DNA of 64,000 nucleotides, taken from NCBI GenBank assembly GCA_002269645.1, contig NIVC01003986.1, positions 2,341-66,340 of the forward strand, in the 5' to 3' direction. How positions within the stretch are numbered: the stretch's first letter is position 1; each line of letters starts with the position of its first letter. A program made the position numbers and the translations under genes. The notes beneath the pieces are model-generated. The model searched no databases, was not told the origin of the DNA, and was given only the letters and a program-made list of their open reading frames with translations. Origin of the DNA: Macrostomum lignano. Taxonomy: Eukaryota. This document shows positions 15,123-64,000 of this stretch, in pieces.

Positions 15123-15477
15123 ACACAGAAGAAGAGGCATCGGCTGCTTGGAGAACCCGATTATTGATAGGCAGGCAAATGGCAGGAGTTTAAAAAAGCC
15201 ATTAATGAGGATTTATTTTTTCAGCATATCTTCAATTTTGAAACATTTTGTTACAGAACCCGAGCGCAACGTCAAGATATTGACTACTCGGACATTGAAC
15301 CAATAGTCAGTGTGAATTGCTGGTGTAAATTATTTAAGTTTTCCTCAGCTCGGATGGCTGACGGCAGATCAGTCGGGACTGTGAGAGGTGGCATCAGAGG
15401 CAGCATCGATAGGAGCAGCAGACACGCAAATACATTAAATAGTTCTGAGTTGTTGCCCCCCCCCCCAGAGCAGCCAG

Positions 15478-19954: not shown

Positions 19955-20886
19955 TCAGGCCAGGCGGTGCTGCTTGGCGGCGAGCTCGGCCAGACGGGCA
20001 TTCAAATTCTGCGCCAGCGACAGCGCCTTGCCGGACACCAGCGACGTGTCCGACTCGGCCATCTTGCTGGCCACGAAGTCGCGAATCACGAAGTTGTTCT
20101 GCTCCTGGTGCTGCCACCTGCGCTCCAGGTTGGCTAGCTGGGCGTGCGTCTCGTTGTCCGACAGCTCCCGGCGGCGGGCGTCGCACTCGCGCTCGAGGCT
20201 GCGGATGAGCCGCTTCATCCGGTCCCGGCGGCTGGACAGGGCGTGGCGCTGCCGGCCCAGCTGCGGTGGGGTAGCCGGGGTGGGACAGATGCAGGCAGTG
20301 TGGGACAGATGCAGACAGGGTGGGACAGATGCAGACAAGGTGGGACAGATGCAGGCCGGGTGGGACAGATGCAGGCAGGGTGGGACAGATGCAGGCCGGG
20401 TGGGACAGATGCAGGCAGGGTGGGACAGATGCAGACAGGGTGGGACAGATGCAGGCAGGGTGGGACAGATACAGACAGGGTGGGACAGATGCAGGCCGGG
20501 TGGGACAGATGCAGGCAGTGTGGGACAGATGCAGACAGGGTGGGACAGATGCAGGCAGGGTGGGACAGATGCAGACAGGGTGGGACAGATGCAGGCCGGG
20601 TGGGACAGATGCAGACAGGGTGGGACAGATGCAGGCCGGGTGGGACAGATGCAGGCAGGGTGGGACAGATGCAGACAGGGTGGGACAGATGCAGGCAGGG
20701 TGGGACAGATGCAGACAGGGTGGGACAGATGCAGGCAGGGTGGGACAGATGCAGACAGGGTGGGACAGATGCAGGCCGGGTGGGACAGATGCAGGCAGGG
20801 TGGGACAGATGCAGACAGGGTGGGACAGACACGGAAGCGACTTGACTGCCAAAAATGTAGGTGTGGGTTAGGTTTTCGACCTCGAA

Positions 20887-20947
<61 letters not shown>

Positions 20948-20950
20948 CTC

Positions 20951-21043
<93 letters not shown>

Positions 21044-31973: not shown

Positions 31974-32361
31974 GCAGCCTCAGCTCGTCTCGATATTTTT
32001 GTTGGCTTGCAGAGGATGAGTCAAAGTTCAGCCTGAGTGCATAGTTTTCAATTTACCTGATAAACGGTTGAAGAGTGCAAGTTCAATTAAAGTGACACAA
32101 ATGAGCCTAACTACGAGTATTCCTGTCTCGGCTTTGTACCTGTGCTTTTGCCCTCTAAGCTGGAAGATTAATTTGTTATATATATTTTCTTCATAACTTT
32201 TTTATCCCCGATTTGCCCGTTAGTTACTATTTGAATCTATTACATCGCAAACAGTCGTATATTTTCATCAGTATAAAATGTAACTCTCCGCACTGCTCAG
32301 TGTGCCAGAGTCAGCCCCCATTCATTTGTTCATTCTTCCTACCGAGCCGACGGGCTGTCCG

Positions 32362-33490
32362 GGAGGAGTTTAGAGAGGATTTTAGGGTGGAGTTTAGGGA
32401 GGATTTTAGGGTGGAGTTTAGGGAGGAGTTTAGGGAGGAGTTTAGGGAGGAGTTTAGGGAGGATTTTAGGGTGGAGTTTAGGGAGGATTTTAGGGTGGAG
32501 TTTAGGGAGGATTTTAGGGTGGAGTTTAGGGAGGATTTTAGGGTGGAGTTTAGGGAGGATTTTAGGGTGGAGTTTAGGGAGGAGTTTAGGGAGGAGTTTA
32601 GGGAGGAGTTTAGGAAGGAGTTTAGGGAGGAGTTTAGGGAGGAGTTTAGGGTGGAGTTTAGGGAGGAGTTTAGAGAGGAGTTTAGGGTGGAGTTTAGGGA
32701 GGATTTTAGAGTGGAGTTTAGGAAGGAGTTTAGGGAGGAGTTTAGGGAGGAGTTTAGGGAGGAGTTTAGGGAGGATTTTAGGGTGGAGTTTAGGGAGGAG
32801 TTTAGGGAGGATTTTAGGGTGGAGTTTAGGGAGGATTTTAGGGTGAAGTTTAGGGAGGAGTTTAGAGAGGATTTTAGGGTGGAGTTTAGGGTGGAGTTTA
32901 GGGAGGAGTTTAGGGAGGAGTTTAGGGTGGAGTTTAGGGAGGATTTTAGGGTGGAGTTTAGGGAGGAGTTTAGAGAGGATTTTAGGGTGGAGTTTAGGGT
33001 GGAGTTTAGGGAGGAATTTAGGGAGTTTAGGGTGGAGTTTAGGGAGGAGTTTAGGGAGGATTTTAGGGTGGAGTTTAGGGAGGAGTTTAGGGAGGATTTT
33101 AGGGTGGAGTTTAGGGAGGATTTTAGGGTGGAGTTTAGGGAGGAGTTTAGAGAGGATTTTAGGGTGGAGTTTAGGGTGGAGTTTAGGGAGGAGTTTAGGG
33201 AGGAGTTTAGGGAGGAGTTTAGGGAGGATTTTAGGGTGGAGTTTAGGGAGGAGTTTAGAGAGGATTTTAGGGTGGAGTTTAGGGTGGAGTTTAGGGAGGA
33301 ATTTAGGGAGGAGTTTAGGGTGGAGTTTAGGGAGGAGTTTAGGGAGGATTTTAGGGTGGAGTTTAGAGTGGAGTTTAGGGAGGAGTTTAGGGAGGAGTTT
33401 AGGGTGGAGTTTAGGGAGGAGTTTAGGGAGGATTTTAGCGTGGAGTTTAGGGAGGAGTTTAGGGAGGAGTTTAGGGAGGAGTTTAGAGAG
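32362..33490. repeat. 12-bp telomere-like satellite
   Basis: Units GAGTTTAGGGAG, GATTTTAGGGTG and GAGTTTAGGGTG; nearly all contain TTTAGGG. Confidence 0.95.
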
Positions 33491-33744
33491 AATTCTTGTC
33501 ATGGGCAGCACCGAATACCGGCACTTCTCAGTGGCCTCCCATCCCGACGTTACCGACGGTTAGCCTCTAAATTTGCAAAGGAATTTCATTGCTTAATTGC
33601 AGAAAATTTTAACTATTTTCAATATTACGGGGCGTCTCTACATTCAGTTTACTTTTTTAATCTACTACTCATGTGATAGACTATTTTTCTGCCGCTGTAT
33701 CAAACTGTTCCCACCGGCCACCGAAGCGTCCTGCCGCCCTAGCC

Positions 33745-34750
33745 GGAGGCTCATCTGTGCTAGCTACCCTATAGCTGGAGACTCATCTGTGCTAGCTACC
33801 CTATAGCTGGAGATTAATCTGTGCTAGCTACCCTATAGCTGGAGACTCATCTGTGCTAGCTACCCTATAGCTGGAGATTCATCTGTGCTAGCTACCCTAT
33901 AGCTGGAGACTCATCTGTGCTAGCTACCCTATAGCTGGAGATTCATCCGTGCTAGCTACCCTATAGCTGGAGACTCATCTGTGCTAGCTACCCTATAGCT
34001 GGAGACTCATCTGTGCTAGCTACCCTATAGCTGGAGATTCATCTGTGCTAGCTACCCTATAGCTGGAGACTCATCTGTGCTAGCTACCCTATAGCTGGAG
34101 ATTCATCTGTGCTAGCTACCCTATAGCTGGAGACTCATCTGTGCCAGCTACCCTATAGCTGGAGACTCATCTGTGCTAGCTACCCTATAGCTGGAGATTC
34201 ATCTGTGCTAGCTACCCTACAGCTGGAGACTCATCTGTGCTAGCTACCCTATAGCTGGAGACTCATCTGTGCTAGCTACCCTATAGCTGGAGACTCATCT
34301 GTGCTAGCTACCCTATAGCTGGAGACTCATCCGTGCTAGCTACCCTATAGCTGGAGACTCATCTGTGCTAGCTACCCTATAGCTGGAGACTCATCTGTGC
34401 CAGCTACCCTATAGCTGGAGACTCATCTGTGCTAGCTACCCTATAGCTGGAGACTCATCTGTGCTAGCTACCCTATAGCTGGAGACTCATCTGTGCTAGC
34501 TACCCTAGCTGGGAGGGTCATGTTTGCCAGCTACCCTAGCTGGGAGGGTCATGTTTGCCAGCTACCCTAGCTGGGAGGGTCATGTTTGCCAGCTACCCTA
34601 GCTGGGAGGGTCATGTTTGCCAGCTACCCTAGCTGGGAGGGTCATGTTTGCCAGCTACCCTAGCTGGGAAGGTCATGTTTGCCAGCTACCCTAGCTGGGA
34701 GGGTCATGTTTGCCAGCTACCCTAGCTGGGAGGGTCATGTTTGCCAGCTA
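33745..34750. repeat. 32-bp satellite grading into a related 31-bp satellite
   Basis: CATCTGTGCTAGCTACCCTATAGCTGGAGACT changes to AGCTACCCTAGCTGGGAGGGTCATGTTTGCC at ~34500. Confidence 0.93.
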
Positions 34751-34989
34751 CTGTAGCAGTTGACAGTTCAAAGAAATCAAACTTGAGTTTGAATATTCCC
34801 TGAAGTTGAAAATGATTCCATGCAGAAACTTTGTTACATGTCTTCTCAGCTTTGCTTAACTCATTCAGAAGTGCCATGATACGGCTGCAGTTAACAATCT
34901 CACCACTGTACTTCCATTGCACTTGGAGATCTTGCAACAGTTTAACTGGCCAACGGATGCGCACAAAATGCGCAGAAAAAAAGTTCAGC

Positions 34990-36045
34990 ATGGACAGGAC
35001 AGCAGGTGATATGACAGCAACTGGTGGACAGGACAGCAGGTGATATGACAGCAACTGGTGGACAGGACAACAGGTGATGTGACAGCAACTGGTGGACAGG
35101 ACAGCAGGTGATATGACAGCAACTGGTGGACAGGACAACAGGTGATATGACAGCAACTGGTGGACAGGACAGCAGGTGATATGACAGCAACTGGTGGACA
35201 GGACAGCAGGTGATGTGACAGCAACTGGTGGACAGGACAGCAGGTGATGTGACAGTAACTGGTGGACAGGACAGCAGGTGATGTGACAGCAACTGGTGGA
35301 CAGGACAGCAGGTGATGTGACAGCAACTGGTGGACAGGACAGCAGGTGATGTGACAGCAACTGGTGGACAGGACAGCAGGTGATGTGACAGCAACTGGTG
35401 GACAGGACAACAGGTGATGTGACAGTAACTGGTGGACAGGACAGCAGGTGATATGACAGCAACTGGTGGACAGGACAGCAGGTGATGTGACAGCAACTGG
35501 TGGACAGGACAGCAGGTGATGTGACAGCAACTGGTGAACAGGACAGCAGGTGATGTGACAGCAACTGGTGGACAGGACAGCAGGTGATGTGACAGTAACT
35601 GGTGGACAGGACAGCAGGTGATATGACAGCAACTGGTGGACAGGACAGCAGGTGATGTGACAGCAACTGGTGGACAGGACAGCAGGTGATATGACAGCAA
35701 CTGGTGGACAGGACAGCAGGTGATGTGATAGAAACTGGTGGACAGGACAGCAGGTGATGTGACAGTAACTGGTGGACAGGACAGCAGGTGATGTGACAGC
35801 AACTGGTGGACAGGACAGCAGGTGATGTGACAGCAACTGGTGGACAGGACAGCAGGTGATGTGACAGCAACTGGTGGACAGGACAGCAGGTGATGTGACA
35901 GCAACTGGTGGACAGGACAGCAGGTGATGTGACAGTAACTGGTGGACAGGACAGCAGGTGATGTGACAGCAACTGGTGGACAGGACAGCAGGTGATGTGA
36001 CAGTAACTGGTGGACAGGACAGCAGGTGATGTGACAGTAACTGGA
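34990..36045. repeat. 34-bp minisatellite, ~31 copies
   Basis: Unit GGACAGGACAGCAGGTGATGTGACAGCAACTGGT. Confidence 0.95.
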
Positions 36046-36599
36046 CAGCTGATAAGTTGGGCAGGAAAGCATACGGTGTCCTCACGGGATTGTGACGGCG
36101 CTCATTAGGGATTCACCAGGTGTGACAGGCTGACAGTTTCGAGTTTTACGCGCATGCATAAATTGGTACAGAGTTAAAACTCCAGTTCATGATATTATCG
36201 TCCAAATGGAGTTCTCGATCGCTGCATTCATATTTCAGCATCAATATACGAGTATAACCAATATTGGAGTTACTGACGCCGCGTGTGGCTGATCAGAAAA
36301 CACTCTACTTGCTACTGGCATGAGCGCTTAGGCAGTAGTGAGGTGCGGATCTGACTGCTGCTTTATTGAGACAGCGACGCCAGCACCGCCGCCAGCTCGT
36401 CGGCCACGGCTGAGAACACGAACTCCAGCTGCTCCTGAGGGTGGAGGTGCAGTTATAAGCGTTTTATCTGATAGCGACCGTCGGGTCTGGCGCAGTCCAA
36501 GTGGCTGTGCGAGAGACGGTAAGCAGTGACAATGTGCGCCTGCGAGCCTGAATCATGAGCTCATGCAGACACGCCAGCATAGGAAGTACAGCAGCCCTC

Positions 36600-37200
36600 T
36601 CTCTGATGTATCTTAAGATGTGTCTCTGCTGTGCCTTTGATGCCTCAGTTGTATCCCTGATGTGTCTCTGGTGTATCTCTGCTGTGTCTCTGATGTTTCT
36701 TTGATGTATCTCTGATGTGTCTCTGATGTGTCTCTGGTGTGTGTCTGATGTATCTATGATGTATCTCTGGTGTATCTCTGATGTATCTCTGATGTATCTC
36801 TGATGTATCTCTGGTGTATCTCTGATGTATCTCTGATGTATCTCTGATGTATCTCTGATGTATCTCTGATGTATCTCTGATGTATCTCTGATGTATCTCT
36901 GATGTATCTCTGGTGTATCTCTGATGTATCTCTGATGTATCTCTGGTGTATCTCTGATGTATCTCTGATGTATCTCTGATGTATCTCTGGTGTATCTCTG
37001 ATGTATCTCTGATGTATCTCTGATGTATCTCTGATGTATCTCTGATGTATCTCTGATGTATCTCTGATGTATCTCTGGTGTATCTCTGATGTATCTCTGA
37101 TGTATCTCTGGTGTATCTCTGATGTATCTCTGGTGTATCTCTGATGTATCTCTAGTGTATCTCTGATGTATCTCTGATGTATCTCTGGTGTATCTCTGGT
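36600..37200. repeat. 11-bp minisatellite
   Basis: Unit TGATGTATCTC. Confidence 0.93.
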
Positions 37201-37631
37201 GCGTATCTAATGTGTTTTCGATGTGTCTCGGATATGGCGTGACTCTACATCTATCAAACAAATGCAAGTCCTCGAATTTCAGCTGTCCGCCTGCCCCTCC
37301 CACCTTTTCTCGCCCAGTTATCCTGCACTCCACCTCTGGCCCAGAAGCCCCGCCGCAGATCCCGTCGGCCGGAAACTCGGCAATCCGAGCACGCAGACTC
37401 GGCTTCATCAAGCAGCTCAGTCAGCGCTCGGTCCCGACGGAACTTTCTGGGGCTTCAAAAAATGGCGACCATTCTGGATCTGGGGCCGCCCCCTGTCGCA
37501 GACGCGTACATGAGTGTGGAATTGCAGAGGGCTCGGGTCCCTCCCGGCTGTTGGAGACTTCAAAGCGGAAGATCTTTCTCGAGTAAAAATAGCTTGAAAG
37601 CTGCGATAGACAAGAATTTCTCTGTGAACTG

Positions 37632-38134: not shown

Positions 38135-41100
38135 CGCGGTGTCCACCAGTCCTGGCCGTTGGTCTCGCAGGTGCTCCAGCGAGGCCGCCAGCGAGACCTC
38201 CTTGAGGCAGCCGATGCCGCTGCACAGGCGGGCGAGCACCGAGTCCAGCAGGCAAAATGCTCCGGACCGCCCGGCACCGTCGCTGCAGCGGAGGCGAGGC
38301 TGAGCTTTCAGCAACAGAATTTCAATTCAAATGCAGCAGCCATTCTGGCTGAGCAATGCTCACCTGCAGTGTACAATCAGCGGCGAGCTCCGGCTTCTGT
38401 ACGATTTGTTCACCTTCCTATGGGTGAAAGGGTTAAGTGAACTGAATGAACTGAGAAGCAGAACAAGCATTGGTATCAGATCCAAGCCCCCCAAGCTGAG
38501 CAGAGTGTGGCACCCCGGCTGAGCAGAGTGTGACACCCCAGCTGAGCAGAGTGTGGCACCCCGGCTGAGCAGAGTGTGACACCCCAGCTGAGCAGAGTGT
38601 GACACCCCGGCTGAGCAGAGTGTGGCACCCCAGCTGAGCAGAGTGTGACACCCCGGCTGAGCAGAGTGTGGCACCCCGGCTAAGCAGAGTGTGACACCCC
38701 AGCTGAGCAGAGTGTGGCACCCCGGCTAAGCAGAGTGTGGCACCCCGGCTAAGCAGAGTGTGGCACCCCAGCTGAGCAGAGTGTGACACCCCGGCTGAGC
38801 AGAGTGTGGCACCCCAGATGAGCAGAGTGTGACACCCCGGCTAAGCAGAGTGTGGCACCCCGGCTAAGCAGAGTGTGACACCCCAGCTGAGTAGAGTGTG
38901 ACACCCCGGCTGAGCAGAGTGTGACACCCCGGCTGAGCAGAGTGTGACACCCCGGCTGAGCAGAGCAGAGTGCCGGTCTCACCTCCTGAACTCCAGCAAG
39001 CTGCTGGTGCTGGGCGGCACGCCGGCCTCCTCCCAGCTCAGGTAGTGGAACTGCGTCACCGTCCTGGCCGGGCCCAGCCTTCGCCGCTCGGCCCCGGCAG
39101 CTGCCAGCGGTCGGACGCGCAGACTGCGTATCACAAAATGGTCGCTGCAGACATGCTCGGAGACCAGGTGTACCTGAGGTAATCGGATGAGCTGTTACGA
39201 CCTGCCTGACTGTCGGTCCCAATTTATCTCAATCATTCAAACATAATTAATGACTCCTAACGTCAATCAAGGACACCCGACATCAATCAAGGACACCCGA
39301 CATCAATCAAGGACACCCGACATCAATCAAGGACACCCGACATCAATCAAGGACACCCGACATCAATCAAGGACACCCGACATCAATCAAGGACACCCAA
39401 CATCAATCAAGGACACCCAATATCAATCAAGGACACCCAACATCAATCAAGGACACCCAACATCAATCAAGGACACCCAACATCAATCAAGGACACCCAA
39501 CATCAATCAAGGACACCCAACATCAATCAAGGACACCCAACATCAATCAAGGACACCCAATATCAATCAAGGACACCCAACATCAATCAAGGACACCCAA
39601 CATCAATCAAGGACACCCAACATCAACCAAGGACACCCAACATCAACCAAGGACACCCAACATCAATCAAAGACACCCAACATCAATCAAGGACACCCAA
39701 CATCAATCGGACACCCAACATCAACCAAGGACACCCAACATCAACCAAGGACACCGAATACTCGTACCAGCCAAAGGCCGTCGGAATCAGCAGCCCCAGC
39801 CAAGGGTTTCCAACCCAGGTGTCGGCGGTCTCACCTGGAAGCCGCCGAACTGGGCGCAGCCGCGGTCCGGCCAGTAGTCGGGCAGGCCGGGCTCGCCGGG
39901 CCGGGCCAGGTTGACCAGCCCGGTGGCGCCCGTCTGCCACACCAGACGCCAGAACTCGCCGATGGTGGCGGTCAGCGGGCTCTGCGTGAGGATGTGGCCG
40001 CCGCCGCCGCCGCCGCCGTCCCCGCGGAGATGCCGCGGCAGGCGGCTGTCCTGGACGAGGCTAGCGTTGATGTAGTCGGAGGCGCCGGGCGTGTCTGGGA
40101 GCAGTCGGACTCGGGTTCTGTCGTCTGCGAGTTTTTTTTGGAGATTTCTCGATGACTGAGTCGCAGTTTAAATATGGGCCCAACTGCGGTGCTTTGAGCT
40201 CAGAAATGATTGAGTTTGGGAAGGGTTGAGATTGGGAAGGGTTGAGATTGGGAAGGGTTGAGATTGGGAAGGTTGAGATTGGAAGGTTGAGATTGGAAGG
40301 TTGAGATTGGAAGGTTGAGATTGGGAAGGGTTCAGATTGGGAAGGGTTCAATTGGGAAGGGTTGAGATTAGGAAGGGTTGAGATTGGGAAGGGTTCAGAT
40401 TGGGAAGGGTTGAGATTGGGAAGGGTTCAGATTGGGAAGGGTTCAATTGGGAAGGGTTGAGATTGGGAAGGGTTGAGATTGGGAAGGGTTGAGATTGGGA
40501 AGGGTTGAGATTGGGAAGGGTTGAGATTGGGAAGGGTTGAGATTGGGAAGGGTTGAGATTGGGAAGGTTGGGAAGCGGCTAGATGAGTTTGTTCAATCCG
40601 CAGAAACCGAGGGATTCCTTTAATTCGGTTTGGACACAGCCGTTCCCTGGGGAAAAGCTTAAAACAGCTGTCAGGCAGGAGACGGAGGGCAGACAGAGAG
40701 ATGGGGAATGAAGCTGGACTCACACGGCAGGCGGTCCGGCCGCCGGTTTTTGTCGGCGTTTTCTGGCCGGGTGGCTGCGCTGAACAACCGGCCGTCCTGC
40801 TGGTGCGGCTGCCGCGCCGCTTCCTGCAGCTCCTCCCATTCCTCGCGGAGCTTCTGCTTGTCCGACAGGTGCATCTCCATGTAGTCCTGGGAGCCACGGT
40901 TGCGGGTGGGATTTCTTTCTTAGCTTCTGGTTGGCTGGCTGGGTTCCCAGAGTCATCCAGACTTAGAATACTCCCTTCTTATTATGACGGTTGCTCCAAT
41001 CTAGAAATAATAACTGATCAGATCCGGGGATTCCCTGAAGTCTAACAATAGTCAAGTAGATTGGATTTGGGGATTCCCTGTGATCTAAAAATAGGCAAGT

Positions 41101-43355
41101 TGATTAGTTTGGGATTCCCTGTGATCCAAAAATAGGCAAGTTGATTAGTTTGGGATTCCCTGTGATCCAAAATAGGCAAGTTGATTAGTTTGGGATTCCC
41201 TGTGATAAAAAATAGACATAACTAATTTTGGGGATTCCCGTGATCTAAAATGCATGAATCTCCGGGTTTCAAAGTAAATATGTTGCAAATAGCAGTTAGT
41301 TGTCCTGAATTCTGGGGATTTCTTGATGATCTGTAAAAATCGTTGGTTGCTGCCACGACGAAATGCACCATGAGATTTCCTTCTAAAACAGCAATCCAGA
41401 CTCAGAGACAGCTTTTTTCATAATCAAAACCGGCGAACAGACGAAACTGAAATGCTCACCAGGATGATGTGAGCAGTGCGGATGTCCAGCTCTGCTCGCA
41501 GAGGTTCCTGGCACCTGTGGATAATTAACATCACCAGGATGGCTCATTAACAACTGACAGGACATCCGCAATAAACTCTAGTTTTGTGCAAACAGGCCAG
41601 CTCTGCACAGCAAAAAGTTCGTCTGTCACGAGCAGCGAAGAGAAGCGGTGCCCTGCTACTCTATTTTTAGCATTCGGAAGGGACGAATTAGGCCGGTTTG
41701 ATGGAGTTGCCAGGGGAAAGGAGGCCAGTATTTGACAGGGACAGGGAGCATGGAACAGGAAGGGAGGGCGATGGGGAGGGTGAACAAGGGTGGCTGGCTG
41801 GGGAAGGTCTCAGCGTCTCAGCGAGAGCTTCTCATCAATGCAGCCCCGATGGCAGGGGGATAAGCAAAGTAGGGGATCTCTTTACAGTGCGAGTTTGAGA
41901 GCAGCTGCAGCAGATTACGCTTACAATACCGGCTCACTGCAGCTCGAAATTCTTGCTCACAGCTCTTCTCTTGCACCCTGAAACCTCTCCTCTTGCACCC
42001 TGAAACCTCTCCTCTTGCACCCTGAAACCTCTCCTCTTGCACCCTGAAACCTCTCCTCTTGCACCCTGAAACCTCTCCTCTTGCACCCTGAAACCTCTCC
42101 TCTTGCACCCTGAAACCTCTCCTCTTGCACCCTGAAACCTCTCCTCTTGCACCCTGAAACCTCTCCTCTTGCACCCTGAAACCTCTCCTCTTGCACCCTG
42201 AAACCTCTCCTCTTGCACCCTGAAACCTCTCCTCTTGCACCCTGAAACCTCTCCTCTTGCACCCTGAAACCTCTCCTCTTGCACCCTGAAACCTCTCCTC
42301 TTGCACCCTGAAACCTCTCCTCTTGCACCCTGAAACCTCTCCTCTTGCACCCTGAAACCTCTCCTCTTGCACCCTGAAACCTCTCCTCTTGCACCCTGAA
42401 ACCTCTCCTCTTGCACCCTGAAACCTCTCCTCTTGCACCCTGAAACCTCTCCTCTTGCACCCTGAAACCTCTCCTCTTGCACCCTGAAACCTCTCCTCTT
42501 GCACCCTGAAACCTCTCCTCTTGCACCCTGAAACCTCTCCTCTTGCACCCTGAAACCTCTCCTCTTGCACCCTGAAACCTCTCCTCTTGCACCCTGAAAC
42601 CTCTCCTCTTGCACCCTGAAACCTCTCCTCTTGCACCCTGAAACCTCTCCTCTTGCACCCTGAAACCTCTCCTCTTGCACCCTGAAACCTCTCCTCTTGC
42701 ACCCTGAAACCTCTCCTCTTGCACCCTGAAACCTCTCCTCTTGCACCCTGAAACCTCTCCTCTTGCACCCTGAAACCTCTCCTCTTGCACCCTGAAACCT
42801 CTCCTCTTGCACCCTGAAACCTCTCCTCTTGCACCCTGAAACCTCTCCTCTTGCACCCTGAAACCTCTCCTCTTGCACCCTGAAACCTCTCCTATTGCAC
42901 CTACCTGGCGTTGAGGATGACCAGGTCGGAGCTGCGGCCCCAGTCGCAGACAGTCGCAGGGTTGTCGCGCACGATGACTCTGAGTTCGAGTTGCTGCTGC
43001 TGCTGCTGCTGCTGGAGACTCCGCAGACTCTGCAGGCTCATGAGCTGTTGCTGCGGCTGCCGCAGCTGCTGCGAAGGCGGCGGCGACGGCTGGCGCTGTG
43101 GCGTCGCGTCGGCGGCTGAGCTGTCGGCCAGCAGCAGCGAAGATTCGTCCGTCTCGTCCTGCGGCAGGCCGGAGTCGCTGGACTTGCAGTCTCCGGTGGC
43201 GGCCGCTGCCGACACGCCACCGGCTGCTGTGACGGCGCCCTCACCGCCGGCGTTGGTGGCCGACGAAGCGGTGGCAGCGGCCGCGGGGAGCCGAAGCTCA
43301 GCAGCCGGTCCAGGTCGAAGTCCGTGGAGAAAATCGACTGCAGCATTGCTGGGGC
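38135..43355 (-). CDS. PTPRN: IA-2/phogrin (PTPRN/PTPRN2)-type receptor tyrosine pseudophosphatase, cytoplasmic exons (43355-42905, 41514-41460, 40886-40724, 40124-39835, 39173-38983, 38417-38364, 38282-38135); 5' exons and last exon not resolved
   Basis: [76 protein letters not shown] (IA-2-type Asp), [12 protein letters not shown]. Splice phases are consistent. Confidence 0.9.
38495..38965. repeat. 23-bp intronic minisatellite
   Basis: Unit GCTGAGCAGAGTGTG(A/G)CACCCC(A/G). Confidence 0.95.
39262..39755. repeat. 20-bp intronic minisatellite
   Basis: Unit CATCAATCAAGGACACCC(G/A)A. Confidence 0.95.
40215..40572. repeat. 16-bp G-rich intronic minisatellite
   Basis: Unit GGGAAGGGTTGAGATT. Confidence 0.93.
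41971..42897. repeat. 22-bp near-perfect intronic minisatellite, ~42 copies
   Basis: Unit TTGCACCCTGAAACCTCTCCTC. Confidence 0.97.
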
Positions 43356-43409
43356 CTGGCGAGTTAGAGAGGGGCTCAGCTGCTCGTCAGCCTCGTAGCT
43401 GTGTACAAC

Positions 43410-43850
43410 CGAATGGTTGCTGAGTGCACCCAATAGTTTCTGAGCACACCCTCTGGTTGCTGTGTGTATCCAACAGTCGCTGAGCACACCCTCTGGTTGC
43501 TGTGTGCACCCAACAGTCGCTGAGCACACCCTCTGGTTGCTGAGCACACCCTCTGGTCGCTGAGCACACCCTCTGGTTGCTGAGCACACCCGCTGGTTGC
43601 TGTGTGCACCCAATAGTCGCTGAGCACACCCTCTGGTCGCTGAGCACACCCTCTGGTCGCTGAGCACACCCTCTGGTTGCTGTGTGCACCCAATAGTCGC
43701 TGAGCACACCCTCTGGTTGCTGAGTACACCCACTGGTTGCTGAGCACACCCACTGGTTGCTGAGCACACCCACTGGTTGCTGTGTGCACCCAGTAGTCGC
43801 TGAGCACACCCTCTGGTTGCTGAGTACACCCGATGGTTGCTGAGTAAACC
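43410..43850. repeat. ~20-bp variant minisatellite
   Basis: Unit GCTGAGCACACCCTCTGGT(T/C) with interspersed variants. Confidence 0.9.
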
Positions 43851-44544
43851 TAATGGTTGCTGCTGAGTACACCCTAATCCATTGAGTAACACCTGAAGAT
43901 AGGGTGTACTCCAACCCCCAACCCCCAATGTGAATCTGAGCTATCAATCTCAAGATTGAATAAGCCCCTGAGGGCAAAAGTGCAAAGCTGAGAACTGATG
44001 AGGCATGAAAGCAGCTGACGCCGTCCCGCCATTCGCCACGGAGCCAAGCGTGGAGTCGCTGATTTAATCTCAGCTGCCGCGCAGGCGGATCGATCTGCCT
44101 CCCTCCCAGCTCGGGGCTGCTGCTCTCAGCTTCTCCATTTTCTCAGCGGGGTGGCTATTTTTAAACCTCTGTCCCTCTCCGGTCTGCTCTCAACCTGCTG
44201 CACCGCGGCGCCCAACTCATTCATCTCTGGCCTCGCAGCTCTTGTATAGCTGCTATAGTGCTAAAGTGCAATGCAGATTAGCATGCTCTCGGCGTTCATC
44301 AGCGAGAGCAGCTGACTTTTATATTCATGACTTCTGATTGCAGGCAGCCTTTCAGCATAGCCCAGTCACCGAGTTGAAGGCACTTGAAATTCCTTTGAAT
44401 GGCACATAATTTGCTTGGATTGATTGTTTACTTTGAGAAATCAGTGACAAAATACCCTCCCATGCCATGAGAGCTAGATGAATGCTTGAGTACTATTTAC
44501 ATTAGCGGAGTGCCTAAGCGCCAAAGTGTGGGTTAAGTTAAGCG

Positions 44545-50135: not shown

Positions 50136-53100
50136 TCAGACCCGGTGAGCGTTGAAGGCCTCCCGCTTCTTGGGGTCCGTCGTGTAGCCGCCGATGAAGG
50201 AGCCGTCCTCGGCGAAGCGACCTGCAGAAGTGGGCGGGGAGGGGCGGAGCTGGCAGTGGGGAACCGGGGATCTGCGGAGCTGGCAGTGGGGAACCGGGGA
50301 TCTGCGGAGCTGGCAGTGGGGAACCGGGGATCTGCGGAGCTGGCAGTGGGGAACCGGGGATCTGCGGAGCTGGCAGTGGGGAACCGGGGATCTGCGGAGC
50401 TGGCAGTGGGGAACCGCGGATCTGCGGAGCTGGCAATGGGGAACCGGGGATCTGCGGAGCTGGCAGTGGGGAACCGGGGATCTGCGGAGCTGGCAGTGGG
50501 GAACCGCGGATCTGCGGAGCTGGCAATGGGGAACCGGGGATCGGTCTCTGCGGAGCTGGCAATGGGGAACCGGGGACCTGCGGAGCTGGCAATGGGGAAC
50601 CGGGGATCGGTCTCTGCGGAGCTGGCAATGGGGAACCGGGGATCGGTCTCTGCGGAGCTGGCAATGGGGAACCGGGGATCGGTCTCTGCGGAGCTGGCAA
50701 TGGGGAACCGGGGACCTGCGGAGCTGGCAATGGGGAACCGGGGACCTGCGGAGCTGGCAATGGGGAACCGGGGACCGGTCTCTTGCGGAGCTGCACTCAG
50801 CCAGATTGGCAGGCCTTGCCCAGCACTCCCCGGGGACTGCGAGCCTCCCTTCTACGAGTATACAAGTAGCCGGCCTTTGCCTGCTTAGAAGATTTCCAAA
50901 ACAGAACCGAGCACATTGCATGGATTACTTAGACTGCTCAACTTCAAAAACGGCTCTTCAATCAAAGTAACAACCGAGATTATCCAAATCGCAGAGCTCA
51001 CACAGAGCTGCGTTAGAAATATTTCAAGTGCGGGATCAGAATTCCTCAATTCTCGTTTCGGGATCTGAACTTGAGCGGTGCGGAATCTGAACTACTCATT
51101 AGTGTGGAATGCGACACGCAGATTTGGGCAAAGGTTTGACACTCCTAACTCCATGGAGATCACTCCATAACGTGAAACGAGTAAAACGAGTAATGAGCAC
51201 GCTTGTATCTTGATAGAAAAGCCACGTAAACAGTACAATGTCAGGGGCACTAGCCAGACAAAGAGCCTCTGGCTCAAGAAGAGAGCTAAGATGCTAAATA
51301 GAGCAGCCAGTCATGGATTAATAAATTATGCTAGCTAGCAGGCAGCACGAACGGGCTGGGAGGCAACCAGTTCACACACGGAGACCGCAGAGCCAGCCAA
51401 CTATTAACAGCCAGTCGAATTATTACAATAATAGTCAGACAGGCCATGCAAGCGCGCAATTTAGAGCGATTCTTCAGCCATATTTAGCGATAAAGTCGGA
51501 AATGTTGCAGAGCGGCATCAGAGTTTCTCAGCAGTGCACTTGGCGCAGCAAAGCAAACCCGAATTCTTTCCGTTTTCCTCTGCAATGTTGCAGCAGCGCA
51601 AGATGTGTCGCGGGAAATTAATGCAGGTGCATGATTTTTAGGCAGACGAAGTTGCTGAGCCTTTTTTAGAAATCAAACCTTTGCCCGTATCTGCATATCG
51701 CATTGCATTTCGAACGCTTTATATAATACAAGGCCGAAATTCCACATATTTGTGAGCAGGATTCTTTCACAAGACCGAAATACTTGTGAGCAGGATTCTT
51801 TCACAAGACCGAAATACTTGTGAGCAGGATTCTTTCACAAGACCGAAATACTTGTGAGCAGGATTCTTTCACAAGACCGAAATACTTGTGAGCAGGATTC
51901 TTTCACAAGACCGAAATACTTGTGAGCAGGATTCTTTCACAAGACCGAAATACTTGTGAGCAGGATTCTTTTGCAAGACCGAGATTTCACATAGTTGTGA
52001 GCAGGATTCTTTCACCAGACCGAAATTTTACATATCTGTGAACAAGAATATTTTCCAACACTGTACAAGATTCAAGCAATGTGCAATCATCAGACTTGGG
52101 AAACTACAAAACTTTATTTGGAAGCACACTATTCGGAAATAATTTAGGCATATGATGAGACTCGGGACATCTAAAACTGCAGCCCCATCCGGGTGGGCAA
52201 TAAAGAACTTCGGCGGGCCAGTTTCTCCTTCCAATGCTGCATCTGCAGCTCCACCCGCAGCCAAATAAAATGCGCTGCCATCTCCGCCCCCAGAGCCAAG
52301 CGAAACACGTCAGCCTGGAAGAGTCGCAGAGCCCGCCACCCCAGTGGGAACATATTTTTAATTTATGACCGACAGACGCGCAGCGGCTGACTGACCGGGA
52401 TGAAGGACAAAAGCAGCCACTGCAGTTTAGCAGCCGCGAAGCCCGGGGACACCCGAGCCACTCACTCCCTCTTGCAGGCCGAGGCCCGCCGGCCGCATGC
52501 GTCACCACCGAGCGGCCGCCACCCCCGGCCCGCAGCCAGCGCTAACAGGATCAGTCAGGCGAGCGCAGACAGGCGTGACGGATGGATAAATCATATTTAC
52601 TACTCGCGAGCGCAGCGCCATGACTGGGTGCGGCCCAACTATAGCTCGTATATGCATGCAATACAGCAGATTCTTTTCTTTGAATTTCGCATTGAAAGAC
52701 GGCGACCTTAACAAAACAGTTTGACCTTGGAGCAGTGGTGCCGCTATGAGTGAGGCCCTATTGTATTCACTGGCCCGTTGAACTAGCAAGGGAACCTCTA
52801 GCCATAGGAGCTGGCTTTCATATTTCATATCTTTCAGTGCAAAACAATTATTGATTTCCTGCAACAATTCAACAGGCCAATAGCTCAGCAATAGACAAGG
52901 CCCGGCCCCCAATCACTCACCGACATCAGTGCCGACAACCCAATCACTCACCGACATCAGTGCCGGCAACCCAATCACTCACCGACATCAGTGCCGGCAA
53001 CCCAATCACTCACCGACATCAGTGCCGGCAACCCAATCACTCACCGACATCAGCGCCGGCAACCCAATCACTTACCGACATCAGCGCCGGCAACCCAATC

Positions 53101-53873
53101 ACTCACCGACATCAGCGCCGGCAACCCAATCACTCACCGACATCAGCGCCGGCAACCCAATCACTCACCGACATCAGCGCCGGCAACCCAATCACTTACC
53201 GACATCAGCGCCGGCAACCCAATCACTCACCGACATCAGCGCCGGCAACCCAATCACTCACCGACATCAGCGCCGGCAACCCAATCACTCACCGACATCA
53301 GCGCCGGCAACCGAATCACTCACCGACATCAGCGCCGGCAACCCAATCAGTCACCGACATCAATGTCGTCATCGTTGCCGTACTCGTCCAGCTCCTGGTC
53401 GTCTTTGCTGGCAGCCGAGATGCTGGAGCTCAGGGACAGCCGAGAGGCTTTCAGGCCGCCTTCCTCGGGCCGCTGGTACTCCTTGAACTGCTCCTCCTTG
53501 GCCTCCAAGTCCGGGTGGTTGCCTTGCTGTCGCTCCTTCTCGTCCAGCATGTACGTCTGGCCGGAGTCGCGGCGCAGCAGGAAGACCAGAAGGGCGGCGA
53601 TCAGCAGCAGCAGCAGGAAGGCGATCAGGATGGCCACCAGGATGCCCGGCCCGGCCGAGGCCACCTCCAGCACCGGCTTGCCCTGCGGGACCGAGCGGGT
53701 GGTGTCGGCTTGGGGAGGCAGTTTCAGACACACACAGAGACAGACAGACAGAGAGACAGACAGACAGACAAAGATACAGACAGACAGACACAGACAGACA
53801 GAGAGCCAAACAGACAGACAGACAGACAAAGATACAGACAGACAGACAGACAGACAGAGAGCCAAACAGACAA

Positions 53874-53912
<39 letters not shown>

Positions 53913-56857
53913 GAACCAAACAGACGGAGACAGACAGAGAGACAGACAGACGGACAGACAGACAAGCCTCACCTGAAAGTCTATACCCATTACGATGGGC
54001 CGGAGGCTGGAAGCCACATCAAAGTCCGTAGAGTAGAAGCACATGCGGTCGGCGCGGCAGTCTTTGTCGCCGGCGGCCACATCGCGCGAGCCGTGTCGGT
54101 CTTTATGCAGCTGAAGGTTAACCAGGCTGACCCGGCTGGGGTAGCGGAAGTTGAACACCGGCGTGAGGGTCTTGCGCTTCTGAAGCTCGACCAGCACCTT
54201 GTCGTCGGTGATGGGGTGCACCTACAGGCAGCGGGATGGGAGTTCGAACTCGACTGAGGGCAGAGTTTTGGCGACATCAACCTACAGGCCGAGGTGAGGC
54301 TAGCAGGCGGAGTGCACAGCAGCCAGCGTTCTTTGGGCTCTCGAACATGGTGGGTGTCAGCACTGGGGAGCCACTGCAGGAACCAATCCAGGGCCCACAC
54401 CAGGAATCACTTCATGGGTCTTTGCGTGGAACACAATACATGTAGAAACTACTCTAGTGACCACAACAGGGTCACTCCAGTAGTCATAACAAGGGTTACT
54501 CCAGTGGCCACAAGGGTCACTCCAGTGTCCACAAGGGTCACTCCAGTACGTGGTCACAGCACAGCAGGGTCACTCCAGTAGTTACAACAAGGGTTACTCC
54601 AGTGGCCACAAGGGTCGCTCCAGTGGCCAAAACAGGGTCACTCCAGTGGCCACAGCAGGGATCACTCCAGTCACCACAGCAGGGATCACTCCAGTCACCA
54701 CAGCAGGGATCACTCCAGTCACCACAGCAGGGATCTAGGGCCCACTCCAGAAGAGGACGGTGCGATACCGGTCTAGCTGGTTGAAACCGGCTACCTTGAA
54801 CCTGACAAGACCAGTTGGAACCAGCAGCTCACCTTGAACGTCAGCCTGTTAGTATCGCGTTCGAAGGTAATTTCGGACACGCCCTTCTGGTTGATGATGT
54901 TCAGGTCCTTCAGATAGACATCGTCAATCTTAAACATGGCCATCACCTCCACGCCGATGGCTTTGAGCTTAGCGGTGACCTCGGGCTTGAGAGCCACGGA
55001 GAACTCGGCCCCGGACGCGGTGGAGCAGCGCTGCTCCGAGCAGTTCCTGGCCCTGCTCAGGTCAAAGCTGGCAGGAGTTGGCCGATGTAGGAAGAACACG
55101 CTGCTGCCGGACTCCACGACGTATTTCGGCATGCCGATCTTCTCAGCGTCCGCTTTGCCGACGGTGGCCCGGCAGATAACGCGGTGGGTGAAGTCCCTGC
55201 CGGTCGAGGAGTCACCGGGCGGCACCCTGCTCACCGTGATGTTGATGGTCCGCCTGTCCGTCAGGGAGGTCAGCGTGTCCACCGACACCGTCCGCGAGCC
55301 AAACAGCGAGTTGAACTCGCTCATCCGCAGCTCCTTCCAGTCCGCGCTTTCGCGAACGGCCGGCGAATAGAACACGGGCTCGGCGGTCACTTGAGCGACG
55401 TTGTTGAAATAAGTGGAGCAGTTGTAGGACATGGACTCGCCCTCCATGGCGTAGATGACGGCTGGCAGGCTGCCGGACACTTCGCTGGGGCCATCGGACG
55501 GCTTGTAGCTGAATTGCGGCATGCTGACTACGTCCGCGTTAAATGTGAACTTCTTGTTGCCCGCCTCGCACATGTACTGGCCGGCGTGACGGTTCTGCGC
55601 CGTCGGCGGGAACTCGATGATGTTGCCTGTCTTGGAAACCCGGATGCCGTCAACCTCGGTCCAGTCCTTGGTGCTCATGGGGGTCAGAGCCTTCCTCCTG
55701 TGGTCCTTGCTGGTGTGCGTGAACTTGTAGACAGTGAGCGGGTCCGAGCAGATGATGGGGCACACCAGCGGCGTGTGGTCCATGCCGGAGAATATGGAGA
55801 TCGGCTCCTCATTCACGTTGTCGGGCAGAGAGCAGTCAGGCGCGTTGACTCCCTGCTTGGTGTACATCACCTTGTCTCTGGGGATCTTCTGCTCAACGGA
55901 GAAGGTCCGGTCGTATGGTTGGCCCTGGCCGGAAAAAGACAGCGTGGCGCAGATGCCGACCTGCGTCGGCGAGCGCCCCTCGAAGGAATTGAAAATGCTG
56001 GCGCTGAGGCCGTAGGCGGCGTAGTGCAGCCTGCCGGTGGCCAGGTTCAGGTGGATGTGCTTGAGCAGGTTCTGCGCCTTGTCGTCAAGCTTTGAATGAT
56101 AATTCACGAACAGGGCCGCCCGGGACACCTGGTAGTTCTCGCAGGACCCGGCATCGAAGTTGAGCACGGCTCCCATGTTGATCTTGGCCCTGAGAAACGG
56201 CGGGGCATTTCTTAGCGCGTTGACCACGGAGGGGTCGAGAAATTCCTTAAAGCCGAAGTTGGACTCCATCTTCAGGTTCTTGAGAAACGACACGGCATCC
56301 GGCGTCAGAAAGCGAGTAGAGATGGACGAGCCGCTGGACGTCTTGCTTCTGTATTTGCCCAGGGGTTCCAGACTCCACACGAACAGGCTGTTGGACACCA
56401 GCTTCACCTCCGGCTGTCCGGCCACAAGCACTTCCACCAACAGCTCCAGCTTGCTGTTGAACACGTCGTAGGAGCCCAGCGGCGTATCCAGCAGCTTGAA
56501 CTCGTAGGAGCCCTCCTTGGCATCGATGATGCGCACCGAGAACGGGATCTGCGTGCTCTCGCACCGCTCCTGGTGGCGGGTCACCGATGACAGGTCGATG
56601 GTGTTGAAGGTGGCGCTATTGGCGCACTTGTACTTGAGAACGGCCGAGTGGCCGATGTCCGCCCTGCCCTCCAGGGCGATCTTGATCTTCAGGCTCTTGT
56701 CGGGCATTAGGAAGGCCATCATGTTCGGGCTGCCGACCTCCCAGACTTCGTCCCAAGAAAGGAGAATCTTGCCAGTCTGGGAGAAGTTAAAGCGCACCTT
56801 GTCCTCTGCAGCCGCGGCTGCCAGGCACAGCACCAGGACACAGCCCAGAGACAGCAT
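50136..56857 (-). CDS. Type I Ig-domain membrane protein with an L1CAM/neuroglian-like cytoplasmic tail, 4 coding exons (56857-54833, 54221-53973, 53682-53355, 50221-50136), ~895 aa
   Basis: Signal peptide [17 protein letters not shown]; Ig-like [10 protein letters not shown] and EGESMSYNC...VICRA; [26 protein letters not shown]; tail RRDSGQTY...FKEYQRP...LDEYG...[13 protein letters not shown]. Splice phases are consistent. Confidence 0.85.
50245..50785. repeat. 30-bp (38-bp variants) intronic minisatellite
   Basis: Unit GGCAGTGGGGAACCGGGGATCTGCGGAGCT. Confidence 0.95.
51750..52030. repeat. 34-bp intronic minisatellite
   Basis: Unit TTGTGAGCAGGATTCTTTCACAAGACCGAAATAC. Confidence 0.93.
52910..53360. 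repeat. 31-bp minisatellite made of the exon-3 donor junction
   Basis: Sense unit GATGTCG|GTGAGTGATTGGGTTGCCGGCGCT. Confidence 0.93.
53725..53965. repeat. (GACA)n-type intronic microsatellite
   Basis: Directly visible. Confidence 0.93.
54455..54735. repeat. ~21-23-bp degenerate intronic minisatellite
   Basis: Core CAGGG(T/A)TCACTCCAGT. Confidence 0.85.
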
Positions 56858-61744: not shown

Positions 61745-64000
61745 TCAATCGATGAGCTCCGGGTAGCAGGTGGCGAGGCAGCCGGGCCCGATGGTGTGGC
61801 AGAAGACCCGCACCCGGTGCGGCCCGATCCGAGCCTGCGGCCGTTGGCCCCCGCAACACAGAAAGGCAACGGTGTACAAGGCGAGTTCGAACTCCGGACT
61901 GACGCCGACAAAGCCGCCGCCGCGCGGTTTGACGGGCCCGTCATCCAGGCTGAACTTCAGCGCGGCCAGGCCTGGCTGCCCGTCCACGCCCGGCGCGGCG
62001 GTGCCTCGCCTGTAGTAGCCGAAGTAGTTGAGGCGGCCCGCCCGCTCCAGCAGGTACAGCTGCAGCCAGTTGTGCGCGCCCGTCACCGAGGCCGCCTCCG
62101 AGTCCGAGCCGTCCTCGGAGCGGGTCTCGCCGACAAACACGTGCTCGAATGCGCTGGAGTCCTGGCGGCGGGGCGACAGATAATGCAATGCTGCCTTCTG
62201 ATTGGCTGCTCTGCTCTCAGGCTTCATTAAGTCCCCGAAGCTGGTCACTGATTGGCTGCTCTGCTCTCAGGCTTCATTCAGTCCCCCAAGCTGGTCACTG
62301 ATTGGCTGCTCTGCTCTCAGGCTTCGATCAGTCCCCCAAGCTGGTCACTGATTGGCTGCTCTGCTCTCAGGCTTCATTCAGTCGCCCCAGCTGGTCACTG
62401 ATTGGCTGCTCTGCTCTCAGGCTTCATTCAGTCGCCCCAGCTGGTCACTGATTGGCTGCTCTGCTCTCAGGCTTCATTCAGTCGCCCCAGCTGGTCACTG
62501 ATTGGCTGCTCTGCTCTCAGGCTTCATTCAGTCGCCCCAGCTGGTCACTGATTGGCTGCTCTGCTCTCAGGCTTCATTCAGTCGCCCCAGCTGGTCACTG
62601 ATTGGCTGCTCTGCTCTCAGGCTTCATTCAGTCGCCCCAGCTGGTCACTGATTGGCTGCTCTGCTCTCAGGCTTCATTCAGTCGCCCCAGCTGGTCACTG
62701 ATTGGCTGCTCTGCTCTCAGGCTTCATTAAGTCGCCCTGCAGCTGGTCACTGCTTGGCTGCTTTGCTCTCAGGCTTCATTATTACGTCTGAGATCATTTT
62801 CACTTGTCTGAGATCACCTGCGCTTGTCTGAGTCTCTGAGATCACCTGCGCTTGTCTGAGATCACCTGCCCTTGTCTGAGATCATCTTCACTTGTCTGAG
62901 ATCATCTTTACTTGTCTGAGATCATCTTCACTTGTCTGAGATCATCTTCACTTGTCTGAGATCATCTTTACTTGCCTGAGATACCTGCGCTTGCCTGAGA
63001 TCACCTGCACTTGTCTGAGATCATCTTCACTTGTCTGAGATCATATTCACTTGCCTGAGATCACCTGCGCTAGCCTGAGATCACCTGCACTTGTCTGAGA
63101 TCATCTTCACTTGTCTTGAGATCATATTCACTTGCCTGAGATCACCTGCACTTGTCTGAGATCATCTTCACTTGTCTGAGATCATATTCACTTGCCTGAG
63201 ATCACCTGCGCTAGCCTGAGATCACCTGCACTTGTCTGAGATCCAGAGTGGGACTAAACACCAACTGAACCCAGCCTGCTCCTACCGGGCCATCAGCCGC
63301 TTACTCGTACCTGGAGGTTCCTGGGCCGCCGCGCACCCGCTTGTACATGCGGAACCAGATCTGGTCCAGCTCCGCGGCGAAACCTCGAACGCTCTGGCTG
63401 GCGAGGCCACGCCCGGCCAGGAACCGGTGAGCCGCCCGCATCGGCCGCGTGTCCAGACAGGCCTGGATGAAGGCGGCGTTCTCGCTCAGCTCCTCCGCTG
63501 TCACCGACTCCGGGACGCCCACCGCCAGCTCGTAGTTGTCCAGCAGGGCGGCGAATGCTGCGGCGGGATGGGGGTGGCACACCGGTTGAGAGACACCGGC
63601 TGGTAATGTAAGACACCTATTTGGTAGGAAACCTGGGACACCAGTTGGTAATGTAAGACACCGGTTATTACTCTAATTACTGGCTAATGTAAAGACACTG
63701 GCTAGGGATATGAGACACTGGGTGATGATATGAGACACTGGGTGATGATATGAGACACTGGGTGATGATATGAGACACTGGGTGATGATATGAGACACTG
63801 GGTGATGATATGAGACACTGGGTGATGATATGAGACACTGGGTGATGATATGAGACACTGGGTGACGATATGAGACACTGGCTAAGTAAGTACTGAGCTA
63901 CTGAGTAAGCACAGATCCGCACAGTTACAAGATTAACAGGACAGCAAGAGTTCGAGCTCGGCGCAGGCACAGAGCTGGCCCAGACTCACCCCGGTAGTGG
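61745..64000 (-). CDS. ENDOU: EndoU/XendoU poly(U)-specific endoribonuclease, 3' exons (>64000-63990, 63557-~63311, 62161-61745); 5' part lies outside the window
   Basis: AFAALLDNYE, IWFRMYKR, DSSAFEHVFVGE, TGAHNWLQLY, K, VSPEFELALYT; catalytic His/His/Lys-type motifs are present. Confidence 0.9.
62195..62780. repeat. 50-bp intronic minisatellite
   Basis: Unit ATTGGCTGCTCTGCTCTCAGGCTTCATTCAGTCGCCCCAGCTGGTCACTG. Confidence 0.95.
62790..63242. repeat. 20-bp intronic minisatellite
   Basis: Unit TGAGATCATCTTCACTTGTC and variants. Confidence 0.93.
63705..63880. repeat. 20-bp intronic minisatellite
   Basis: Unit ATGAGACACTGGGTGATGAT. Confidence 0.95.

Follow-up and report, generated by a model that had tools for sequence, protein, structure and literature searches.

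A Macrostomum lignano gene family in which an L1-type cytoplasmic tail appears to be paired with a non-L1 ectodomain

The stretch of DNA analyzed here (the window) comprises 64,000 nucleotides of the flatworm Macrostomum lignano (assembly GCA_002269645.1, contig NIVC01003986.1, positions 2,341 to 66,340), and one of its genes, located on the minus strand, is the subject of this report. An earlier note, made from the letters alone, had described this gene as a receptor with the cytoplasmic tail of the L1/neuroglian family on an ectodomain that is not of the L1 type. As read from its sequence, the product of the locus is a type I membrane protein of the secreted pathway, with an ectodomain containing immunoglobulin (Ig) domains, a single transmembrane (TM) helix and an intact L1-type tail. 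The coding sequence (CDS) is distributed over the following exons (nt, nucleotides; aa, amino acids; ORF, open reading frame; D1 to D5, ectodomain domains described below):

50136-56857, minus strand: whole gene, from the ATG at 56857 to a TGA stop ending at 50136; four coding exons and a product of 895 aa
54833..56857, minus strand: coding exon 1, 2025 nt, aa 1-675; signal peptide, D1 to D4 and the first half of D5 (from the ORF and peptide mapping)
53973..54221, minus strand: coding exon 2, 249 nt, aa 676-758; second half of D5, including an invariant 15-residue motif
53355..53682, minus strand: coding exon 3, 328 nt; stalk, TM helix, L1-type juxtamembrane segment, Ser-rich linker and QELDEYG
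50136..50221, minus strand: coding exon 4; ankyrin-binding core and stop (from the alignment to the neurofascin peptide of PDB 7xce)

Most of the ectodomain is thus encoded by a single exon of 2 kb, as had been noted earlier. Mapping of the peptides and inspection of the junctions showed that the reading frames and the splice sites fit exactly, with GT-AG boundaries in all three introns. Exon 1 is followed by the donor AAG/GT at 54832-54831, exon 2 is flanked by the acceptor AG at 54223-54222 and the donor CAG/GTGAGG, and exon 4, located after an intron 3 of 3.1 kb, begins at the acceptor CAG/GT at 50223-50221. The translation is identical to GenBank PAA49069.1 (BOX15_Mlig021638g1) minus a leading in-frame R, with 100% identity over exon 1. 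The exon joins are considered transcript-supported, since the GenBank models of this assembly were built from genome-guided RNA-seq and de novo transcriptome assembly (PMC5730564). The joining of the large exon to the tail exons, which the earlier note had assumed, therefore agrees with an annotation based on RNA-seq, and the same parts are contiguous in one ORF in paralogues described below. The protein is on record in three or four copies that are 99-100% identical, and three near-identical genomic copies encode the same protein, in line with a DV1 assembly that is known to be redundant.

Directly upstream of the ATG there is a pyrimidine tract followed by AG, and the CDS in GenBank starts one codon before the ATG; therefore, no further upstream coding exon would be expected. 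The signal peptide is found at the same position in all of the paralogues of an alignment of 10 sequences (alignment A1) and, given also the CDS start, the N-terminus appears to be complete. The N-terminal 17 residues are hydrophobic and were assigned as the signal peptide (aa 1-17) by reading the sequence and the model, with no dedicated predictor. One hydrophobic TM helix of 23 residues is located at aa 772-794 (window 53575-53643) and is followed by RR. Read in this way from the sequence and the model, the protein has a signal peptide at its N-terminus and crosses the membrane once, as a type I protein.

The TM region and tail matched the Pfam family PF13882 (Bravo_FIGEY) with an E-value of 1.5e-16 and a score of 61.7 bits, the gathering cut-off being 23.8; such a match goes well past what chance would produce. 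This match begins in exon 3 and spans profile positions 1-84 of 86, and the cut-off was also passed by the paralogues P0006 and P0007. All of the motifs that had been listed in the earlier note were present, in the order juxtamembrane basic/Tyr segment, FKEY, LDEYG and F-x-EDGSFIG-x-Y. In a search of PDB sequences, the segment encoded by exon 4 aligned to the neurofascin peptide crystallized with ankyrin-G (PDB 7xce). In neurofascin, the mutation of F1202, E1204, D1205, F1208 or I1209 weakens ankyrin-G binding, the residues N1203, S1207, Y1212 and T1213 provide polar contacts, F1202, E1204 and Y1212 have been named as essential, and Q1211 is absent from the list of contacts (PMC9396398). The window protein retains the equivalents of F1202, E1204, D1205, S1207, F1208, I1209, Y1212 and T1213 in the 7xce alignment, and it departs from the neurofascin peptide at two positions, N1203>A, which is a contact, and Q1211>G, which is not. 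As far as the sequence tells, this is a genuine and intact L1-type ankyrin-binding tail.

The change from FIGQY to FIGGY had been pointed out in the earlier note. Considered as a functional change, it was rejected: FIGGY is an unremarkable variant, because Q1211 is a non-contact position that varies naturally, being A in CHL1 (PMC12681835) and G, E or D among the M. lignano paralogues. The syndecan family PF01034 was also considered; the window protein remained below its cut-off (18.3 vs. 25.2 bits), with a match limited to the TM and juxtamembrane stretch, and the paralogue P0007 just exceeded it (28.4 bits). This similarity is interpreted as that of a TM helix followed by a basic juxtamembrane segment. 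The tail domain as such is no discovery, because the automatic annotation of UniProt already names these proteins "Bravo_FIGEY domain-containing".

The ectodomain has a length of ~750 aa. Its domain limits were taken from the DSSP assignment on an AlphaFold model built on alignment A1 and are given in CDS numbering, with the exception of D5, for which P0001 numbering (CDS numbering plus 1) is used:

aa ~21-164, minus strand: D1, all-beta, predicted beta-sandwich (secondary structure of the model)
aa ~179-334, minus strand: D2, predicted alpha/beta (secondary structure of the model)
55511..55813, aa ~349-449, minus strand: D3, Ig domain with C366/C370...C430 and the motif AGQYMC
55076..55468, aa ~464-594, minus strand: D4, Ig-like, predicted beta-sandwich with helical insertions and the conserved Cys pair C480-C562
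residues ~600-760, minus strand: D5, membrane-proximal, predicted alpha/beta with two helices of 9-10 residues, and the invariant 15-residue motif

D3 is the sole segment of the ectodomain with an Ig signal at the sequence level, at approximately residues 360-450. Giant Ig proteins were matched by HMMER at query residues 417-487 with E-values down to 4.8e-15, the paralogue P0008 matched Pfam Ig_2 with an E-value of 6e-4, and a profile of the family matched an Ig domain of obscurin with an E-value of 0.087 in a profile search of PDB sequences. This last search yielded marginal Ig matches and TM-region noise (neurexin, DAP12), and nothing more. The cysteines for the B-F disulfide and the x-G-x-Y-x-C motif of an Ig-fold domain were both found in D3, and the corresponding region of the model consists of beta strands only, with a predicted local distance difference test (pLDDT) of 85-92. 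The two cysteines of D4 are invariant in alignment A1. None of the Pfam Ig models reached its gathering score in the window protein, exon 1 had no Pfam match at E<=1, and the D1, D2 and D5 segments of three paralogues gave only noise in Pfam at E<=10. The Pfam model of the fibronectin type III (FN3) domain, fn3, matched neither the window protein nor any of the paralogues, and no internal repeats were detected in the ectodomain by profile self-comparison. With the signal in D3 and the Cys pair in D4, the earlier impression of about two recognizable Ig-like domains and no obvious FN3 repeats was borne out.

The AlphaFold model had a pLDDT of 72.4 and a predicted template modeling score (pTM) of 0.63, with most blocks of the ectodomain between 75 and 90. 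The best Foldseek matches in the PDB were titin Ig81-83 (2.5e-10) and Dscam1 Ig1-4 (TM-score of 0.48 on the target), and PTP-delta Ig1-Fn2, IL-18R and DIP-alpha were also among the top ones. These matches to tandem-Ig proteins, at 1e-9 to 1e-10, included structures of two to four Ig domains, and the viral library of Foldseek likewise returned Ig-fold proteins. The canonical array of six Ig domains and three to five FN3 domains was found neither in the structure prediction nor by Foldseek, in agreement with the non-L1 character that had been proposed for this ectodomain. The model suggests instead that a beta-sandwich is followed by an alpha/beta, an Ig, an Ig-like and, next to the membrane, a second alpha/beta domain, giving about five domains in all. 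D1, D2 and D5, for which no family assignment was obtained, may represent new extracellular folds in this prediction. A GPS/SEA-like nature of D5 was considered, as its C-x5-C-F-Y-S-T-D-F motif and beta-alpha-beta pattern are loosely reminiscent of such domains, and no claim is made since Pfam gave no support.

The ectodomain was used as the query of an exhaustive HMMER search against 1.84 billion representative proteins, in which 15 matches were obtained in total: the query itself, five full-length relatives (36-44% identity), two distant ones (23-24%) and seven Ig-only proteins. The full-length and distant relatives were all from M. lignano, and no homologue of the ectodomain outside this species was found among these representative proteins. 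A word-indexed homologue search retrieved only the protein's own cluster with exon 1, and only four M. lignano entries with the family alignment. In M. lignano, this ectodomain is shared by at least six groups of paralogues, each of them with near-identical extra copies. In alignment A1, 14 ectodomain cysteines and many motifs are invariant, which argues for a fold that is old and constrained, not decaying. The juxtamembrane motif R-x5-Y-x3-EKE-x2-G-x2-P-x2-E-x3-E-x-FK-x-Y is invariant in all of the members, and the identity to the closest paralogues is 80-89% in the juxtamembrane segment and 38-58% in the ectodomain domains.

The paralogue groups differ in the end of the tail. The FIGxY segment is kept in three of them, P0001 (FIGGY), P0006/P0020 (FIGEY/FIGDY) and P0007 (FIGGY), and the terminal F-x-E-x-GSFIG-x-Y is missing from P0008/P0033, P0036 and P0010/P0040, about half of the groups, in which the juxtamembrane part is kept. 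A six-frame motif scan of the 10 kb that follow the P0033, P0009 and P0040 genes revealed no FIGxY exon. Members of the family are often arranged in head-to-tail tandem pairs, such as those at the loci L001 and L002:

L001, 3042-6689 and 9998-12800: tandem paralogues, almost or completely intronless
L002, 3264-6009 and 9950-12622: tandem paralogues, almost or completely intronless

At L001, the ectodomain, the TM helix and most of the tail of the two paralogues are encoded in single ORFs of 895 and 889 aa, and the FIGxY exon alone is separate from the main ORF. The P0033 gene, at L002, is fully intronless. Introns 1 and 2 of the window gene, located inside D5 and just before the stalk/TM region, are absent from the L001 genes and from P0033, and the intron directly preceding the FIGxY segment is the only one common to all of the FIGxY-bearing members examined. 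Because of these single-ORF paralogues, the junction between ectodomain and tail is known to be physically contiguous in the DNA.

A further set of relatives, formed by P0011, P0013 and the tandem neighbor of P0013 (without Pfam annotation), align to D1-D4 only, with hhalign probabilities of 99.8% and 99.1%. A short hydrophobic stretch forms their C-terminus, and they have no D5, TM helix or L1 tail. From its sequence, the C-terminus of P0013, in which small residues precede a hydrophobic run, may be a glycosylphosphatidylinositol (GPI) signal, which it resembles. Two of these genes lie in tandem at the locus L004:

L004, 3441-5558 and 10001-12031: tandem genes of the D1-D4-only type, intronless

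No L1-tail motif was found within 10 kb of the L004 genes, the one genomic locus examined. Since D1-D4 exists without D5, TM helix and tail, a modular origin of the receptor is favored over the decay of an L1 ectodomain. The earlier note had proposed an exon-shuffled or rapidly diverged receptor reusing an ankyrin-coupling tail; the L1-family identity of the tail and the non-L1 architecture of the ectodomain stand, whereas the idea of a one-off gene has to be abandoned in view of the at least six paralogue groups. Between a shuffled and a rapidly diverged receptor, the modular origin is the one favored, without being proven.

Taken together, we think it likely that the gene encodes a cell-surface receptor or adhesion protein of an M. 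lignano multigene family, with an ectodomain of about five unassigned domains, a single TM helix and a bona fide L1/neurofascin/neuroglian-type tail, of modular origin and linked to ankyrin. The ectodomain would engage a ligand or a neighboring cell, and the tail would connect the protein via ankyrin to the spectrin-actin membrane skeleton through F-x-E-D-G-S-F-I-G-x-Y. By analogy with L1 proteins, phosphorylation of the motif tyrosine could probably switch this link off. The conserved juxtamembrane segment would have a second, ankyrin-independent function common to all of the paralogues, which would explain its retention in those without FIGxY. As to the origin, a cassette of L1-type TM helix and tail would have been attached to an ectodomain module, D1-D4, that is specific to the lineage; duplications in tandem would have followed, with about half of the paralogue groups now being devoid of the terminal FIGxY exon. 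We are evenly divided on a broader proposal, namely that the L1 tail is a portable cassette that was grafted in the Macrostomum lineage onto a lineage-specific, non-L1 ectodomain superfamily, which also exists in tail-less forms with a hydrophobic, possibly GPI-type C-terminus, giving rise to an enlarged repertoire of surface receptors wired to ankyrin and spectrin, next to sister paralogues devoid of a FIGxY exon.

Several points weigh against this explanation. The AlphaFold model was built on only 10 sequences, with an effective number (Neff) of ~2.5, and AlphaFold on the single sequence gave a pLDDT of 33. Foldseek was run on the whole chain and gave no query ranges, and the secondary structure of the model is the only source of the folds suggested for D1, D2 and D5 and of the suggested count of Ig-like domains. 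Ankyrin binding, surface localization and adhesion are inferred functions, read from the protein sequence. The restriction of the family to one species may partly reflect how few macrostomorphan flatworms are represented in the databases. The tail was compared with neurofascin and with the paralogues, and any direction or timing of the shuffling would be provisional.

One alternative is that the gene is a flatworm orthologue, or a duplicate, of L1CAM/neuroglian, whose ectodomain of six Ig and several FN3 domains has shrunk and diverged past recognition with no shuffling involved. Topology and tail are those of L1, at least two Ig-type domains are located in the middle of the ectodomain, the Foldseek matches include neural multi-Ig adhesion molecules (Dscam1, DIP and PTP-delta), and strong divergence is frequent in flatworm proteins. 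Nevertheless, 11 Ig/FN3 domains are impossible because the ectodomain has only ~750 aa and roughly 1100 aa would be needed, and the absence of internal repeats and of an fn3 signal in any paralogue also argues against such an array. D2 and D5 are predicted to be alpha/beta with long helices, and would thus be neither Ig nor FN3 domains. The 14 cysteines that are invariant among old paralogues point to a stable fold, and D1-D4 stands alone in other genes without D5, TM helix and tail. Therefore, we consider this origin unlikely.

Alternatively, the protein could be a surface receptor that has lost ankyrin binding, its tail being a relic whose motifs serve sorting, endocytosis or another partner. 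The groups P0008/P0033, P0036 and P0010/P0040, in which the juxtamembrane part is kept and FIGxY is absent, would be in line with this possibility, as would the N1203>A and Q1211>G differences from neurofascin. In L1 proteins, other partners also bind the same tail. Against a relic, all of the residues whose mutation weakens ankyrin-G binding (F, E, D, F and I) are kept, together with the motif tyrosine. Moreover, the groups that retain the FIGxY exon share 50-71% identity in it, compared with 30-58% in the ectodomain, and continued selection is argued because this exon is no less conserved than the ectodomain. A relic tail thus seems even less probable than an L1 orthologue.

The idea of a gene model artefact, in which a 2-kb exon of unrelated origin has been fused, through a chimeric transcript or through the annotation, with the tail exons of an L1-like neighbor, could draw on the minisatellites that fill introns 1-3, on the donor inside a repeat in the 3.1-kb intron 3 and on the polycistronic precursors that occur in M. 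lignano (PMC5730564), but it was rejected as highly improbable, being effectively refuted by the uninterrupted ORFs with ectodomain, TM helix and L1-type juxtamembrane segment in the two L001 genes and in P0033, and opposed by the identical architecture of five paralogue groups, by the exact fit of frames and GT-AG sites and by the three near-identical genomic copies with the same protein.

The proposed modular, ankyrin-linked receptor can also be set against known systems. With the L1CAM family (L1, neurofascin, NrCAM and CHL1, Drosophila neuroglian, and C. elegans SAX-7/LAD-1) the window protein shares the type I topology, the homologous PF13882 cytoplasmic domain with the same order of motifs and conserved ankyrin-G contact residues, and the presence of Ig-type domains in the ectodomain. 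In contrast to the six Ig and three to five FN3 domains of that family, it has ~750 aa in roughly five domains, two of them predicted to be alpha/beta; it carries FIGGY in place of FIGQY and, unlike the L1CAM family, belongs to a large expansion of paralogues in a single species. C. elegans LAD-2 is a non-canonical L1CAM with a canonical Ig/FN3 ectodomain and a short tail without the ankyrin motif. It provides a precedent for the absence of the ankyrin segment from P0008/P0033, P0036 and P0010/P0040, whereas the flatworm family has an unconventional ectodomain and the window gene keeps the ankyrin motif. The tandem-Ig proteins (Ig domains of titin and obscurin, Dscam1, DIP/Dpr and IL-1R/IL-18R) are the best structural matches and the only ones with which D3 shows likeness at the sequence level, but this likeness is limited to the Ig fold, with 8-13% identity, and none of them has D1, D2, D5 or an L1 tail. 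The window protein is, therefore, an Ig-superfamily receptor with an L1-type tail, and it is not filed as a member of the L1CAM family.

Literature searches with the gene identifiers, with Macrostomum and L1CAM, and with Bravo_FIGEY returned no description of this family. The pairing of a non-L1 ectodomain with an L1 tail, the expansion of the family and the tail-less and D1-D4-only relatives all appear to be undescribed. The L1 tail and its link to ankyrin through FIGQY are generally regarded as going only with the Ig6-FN3 architecture. If the proposed explanation is true, this would be, as far as found, the first described ankyrin-coupling L1 tail outside it, and the family would show the independent reuse of this tail; the sister genes without FIGxY, or with D1-D4 and no L1 tail at all, would likewise show the independence of the modules. 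Such a family would constitute a natural experiment separating the function of the tail from that of the ectodomain, and it supplies natural variants for dissecting the contributions of the juxtamembrane segment and of FIGxY. As M. lignano is a transgenic model amenable to RNA interference, the family is experimentally tractable. The practical impact is modest, as this is the gene family of one species and its tail was already flagged by UniProt.

Micro- and minisatellites fill most of every intron of the window gene, and two of them reach or approach splice sites:

52908..53362, minus strand: 31-nt minisatellite of 14.7 copies with 97% matches, in intron 3 (Tandem Repeats Finder and sequence)
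50244..50774, minus strand: 30-nt minisatellite of 16.9 copies with 93% matches, ending ~20 nt upstream of the exon 4 acceptor
54451-54735: 24-nt repeat, in an intron of the gene
53725-53964: CAGA repeat, in an intron of the gene

The 31-nt minisatellite starts within the last 8 nt of exon 3 and thus repeats the 5' splice site. The annotated donor of exon 3 is G/GTGACT, and the repeat consensus, as well as at least the next downstream copy, has the stronger G/GTGAGT. Reading through the annotated donor gives ...DIDVGD followed by a TGA stop at 53349-53347; therefore, intron retention or the use of any downstream donor would give a tail without FIGGY, similar to that of the tail-less paralogues. 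A role of this minisatellite in splicing is a speculation. In the 30-nt minisatellite, an acceptor-like CCGCAG is present in each unit.

Elsewhere in the window, the pol region of a long terminal repeat (LTR) retrotransposon was found in three adjacent ORFs on the minus strand (3546-6231), with the integrase core at 3546-4532, RVT_1 and RNase H at 4538-5602 and a further ORF at 5512-6231. Four neighboring genes or fragments are unrelated to the L1-tail gene:

7198-8616, minus strand: N-acetylglucosaminyltransferase of the GNT-I family (E=1e-69)
18226-18936, plus strand: ORF with a QRICH1 domain (E=8e-8)
30123-31973, plus strand: DEG/ENaC (ASC) channel in a single ORF of 616 aa (E=2e-36)
61745-62248, minus strand: fragment of a XendoU endoribonuclease (E=6e-33)

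Long minisatellite arrays are very dense throughout the window, for example at 14492-16942, 19929-21400, 32213-33676, 34722-36085, 36464-37411, 39250-40155, 41818-42878 and 43038-43977, a density that may be usual for M. lignano. On both strands, these arrays yield repetitive ORFs of 150-490 aa that are spurious and are a trap for any reading of the window based on ORFs.

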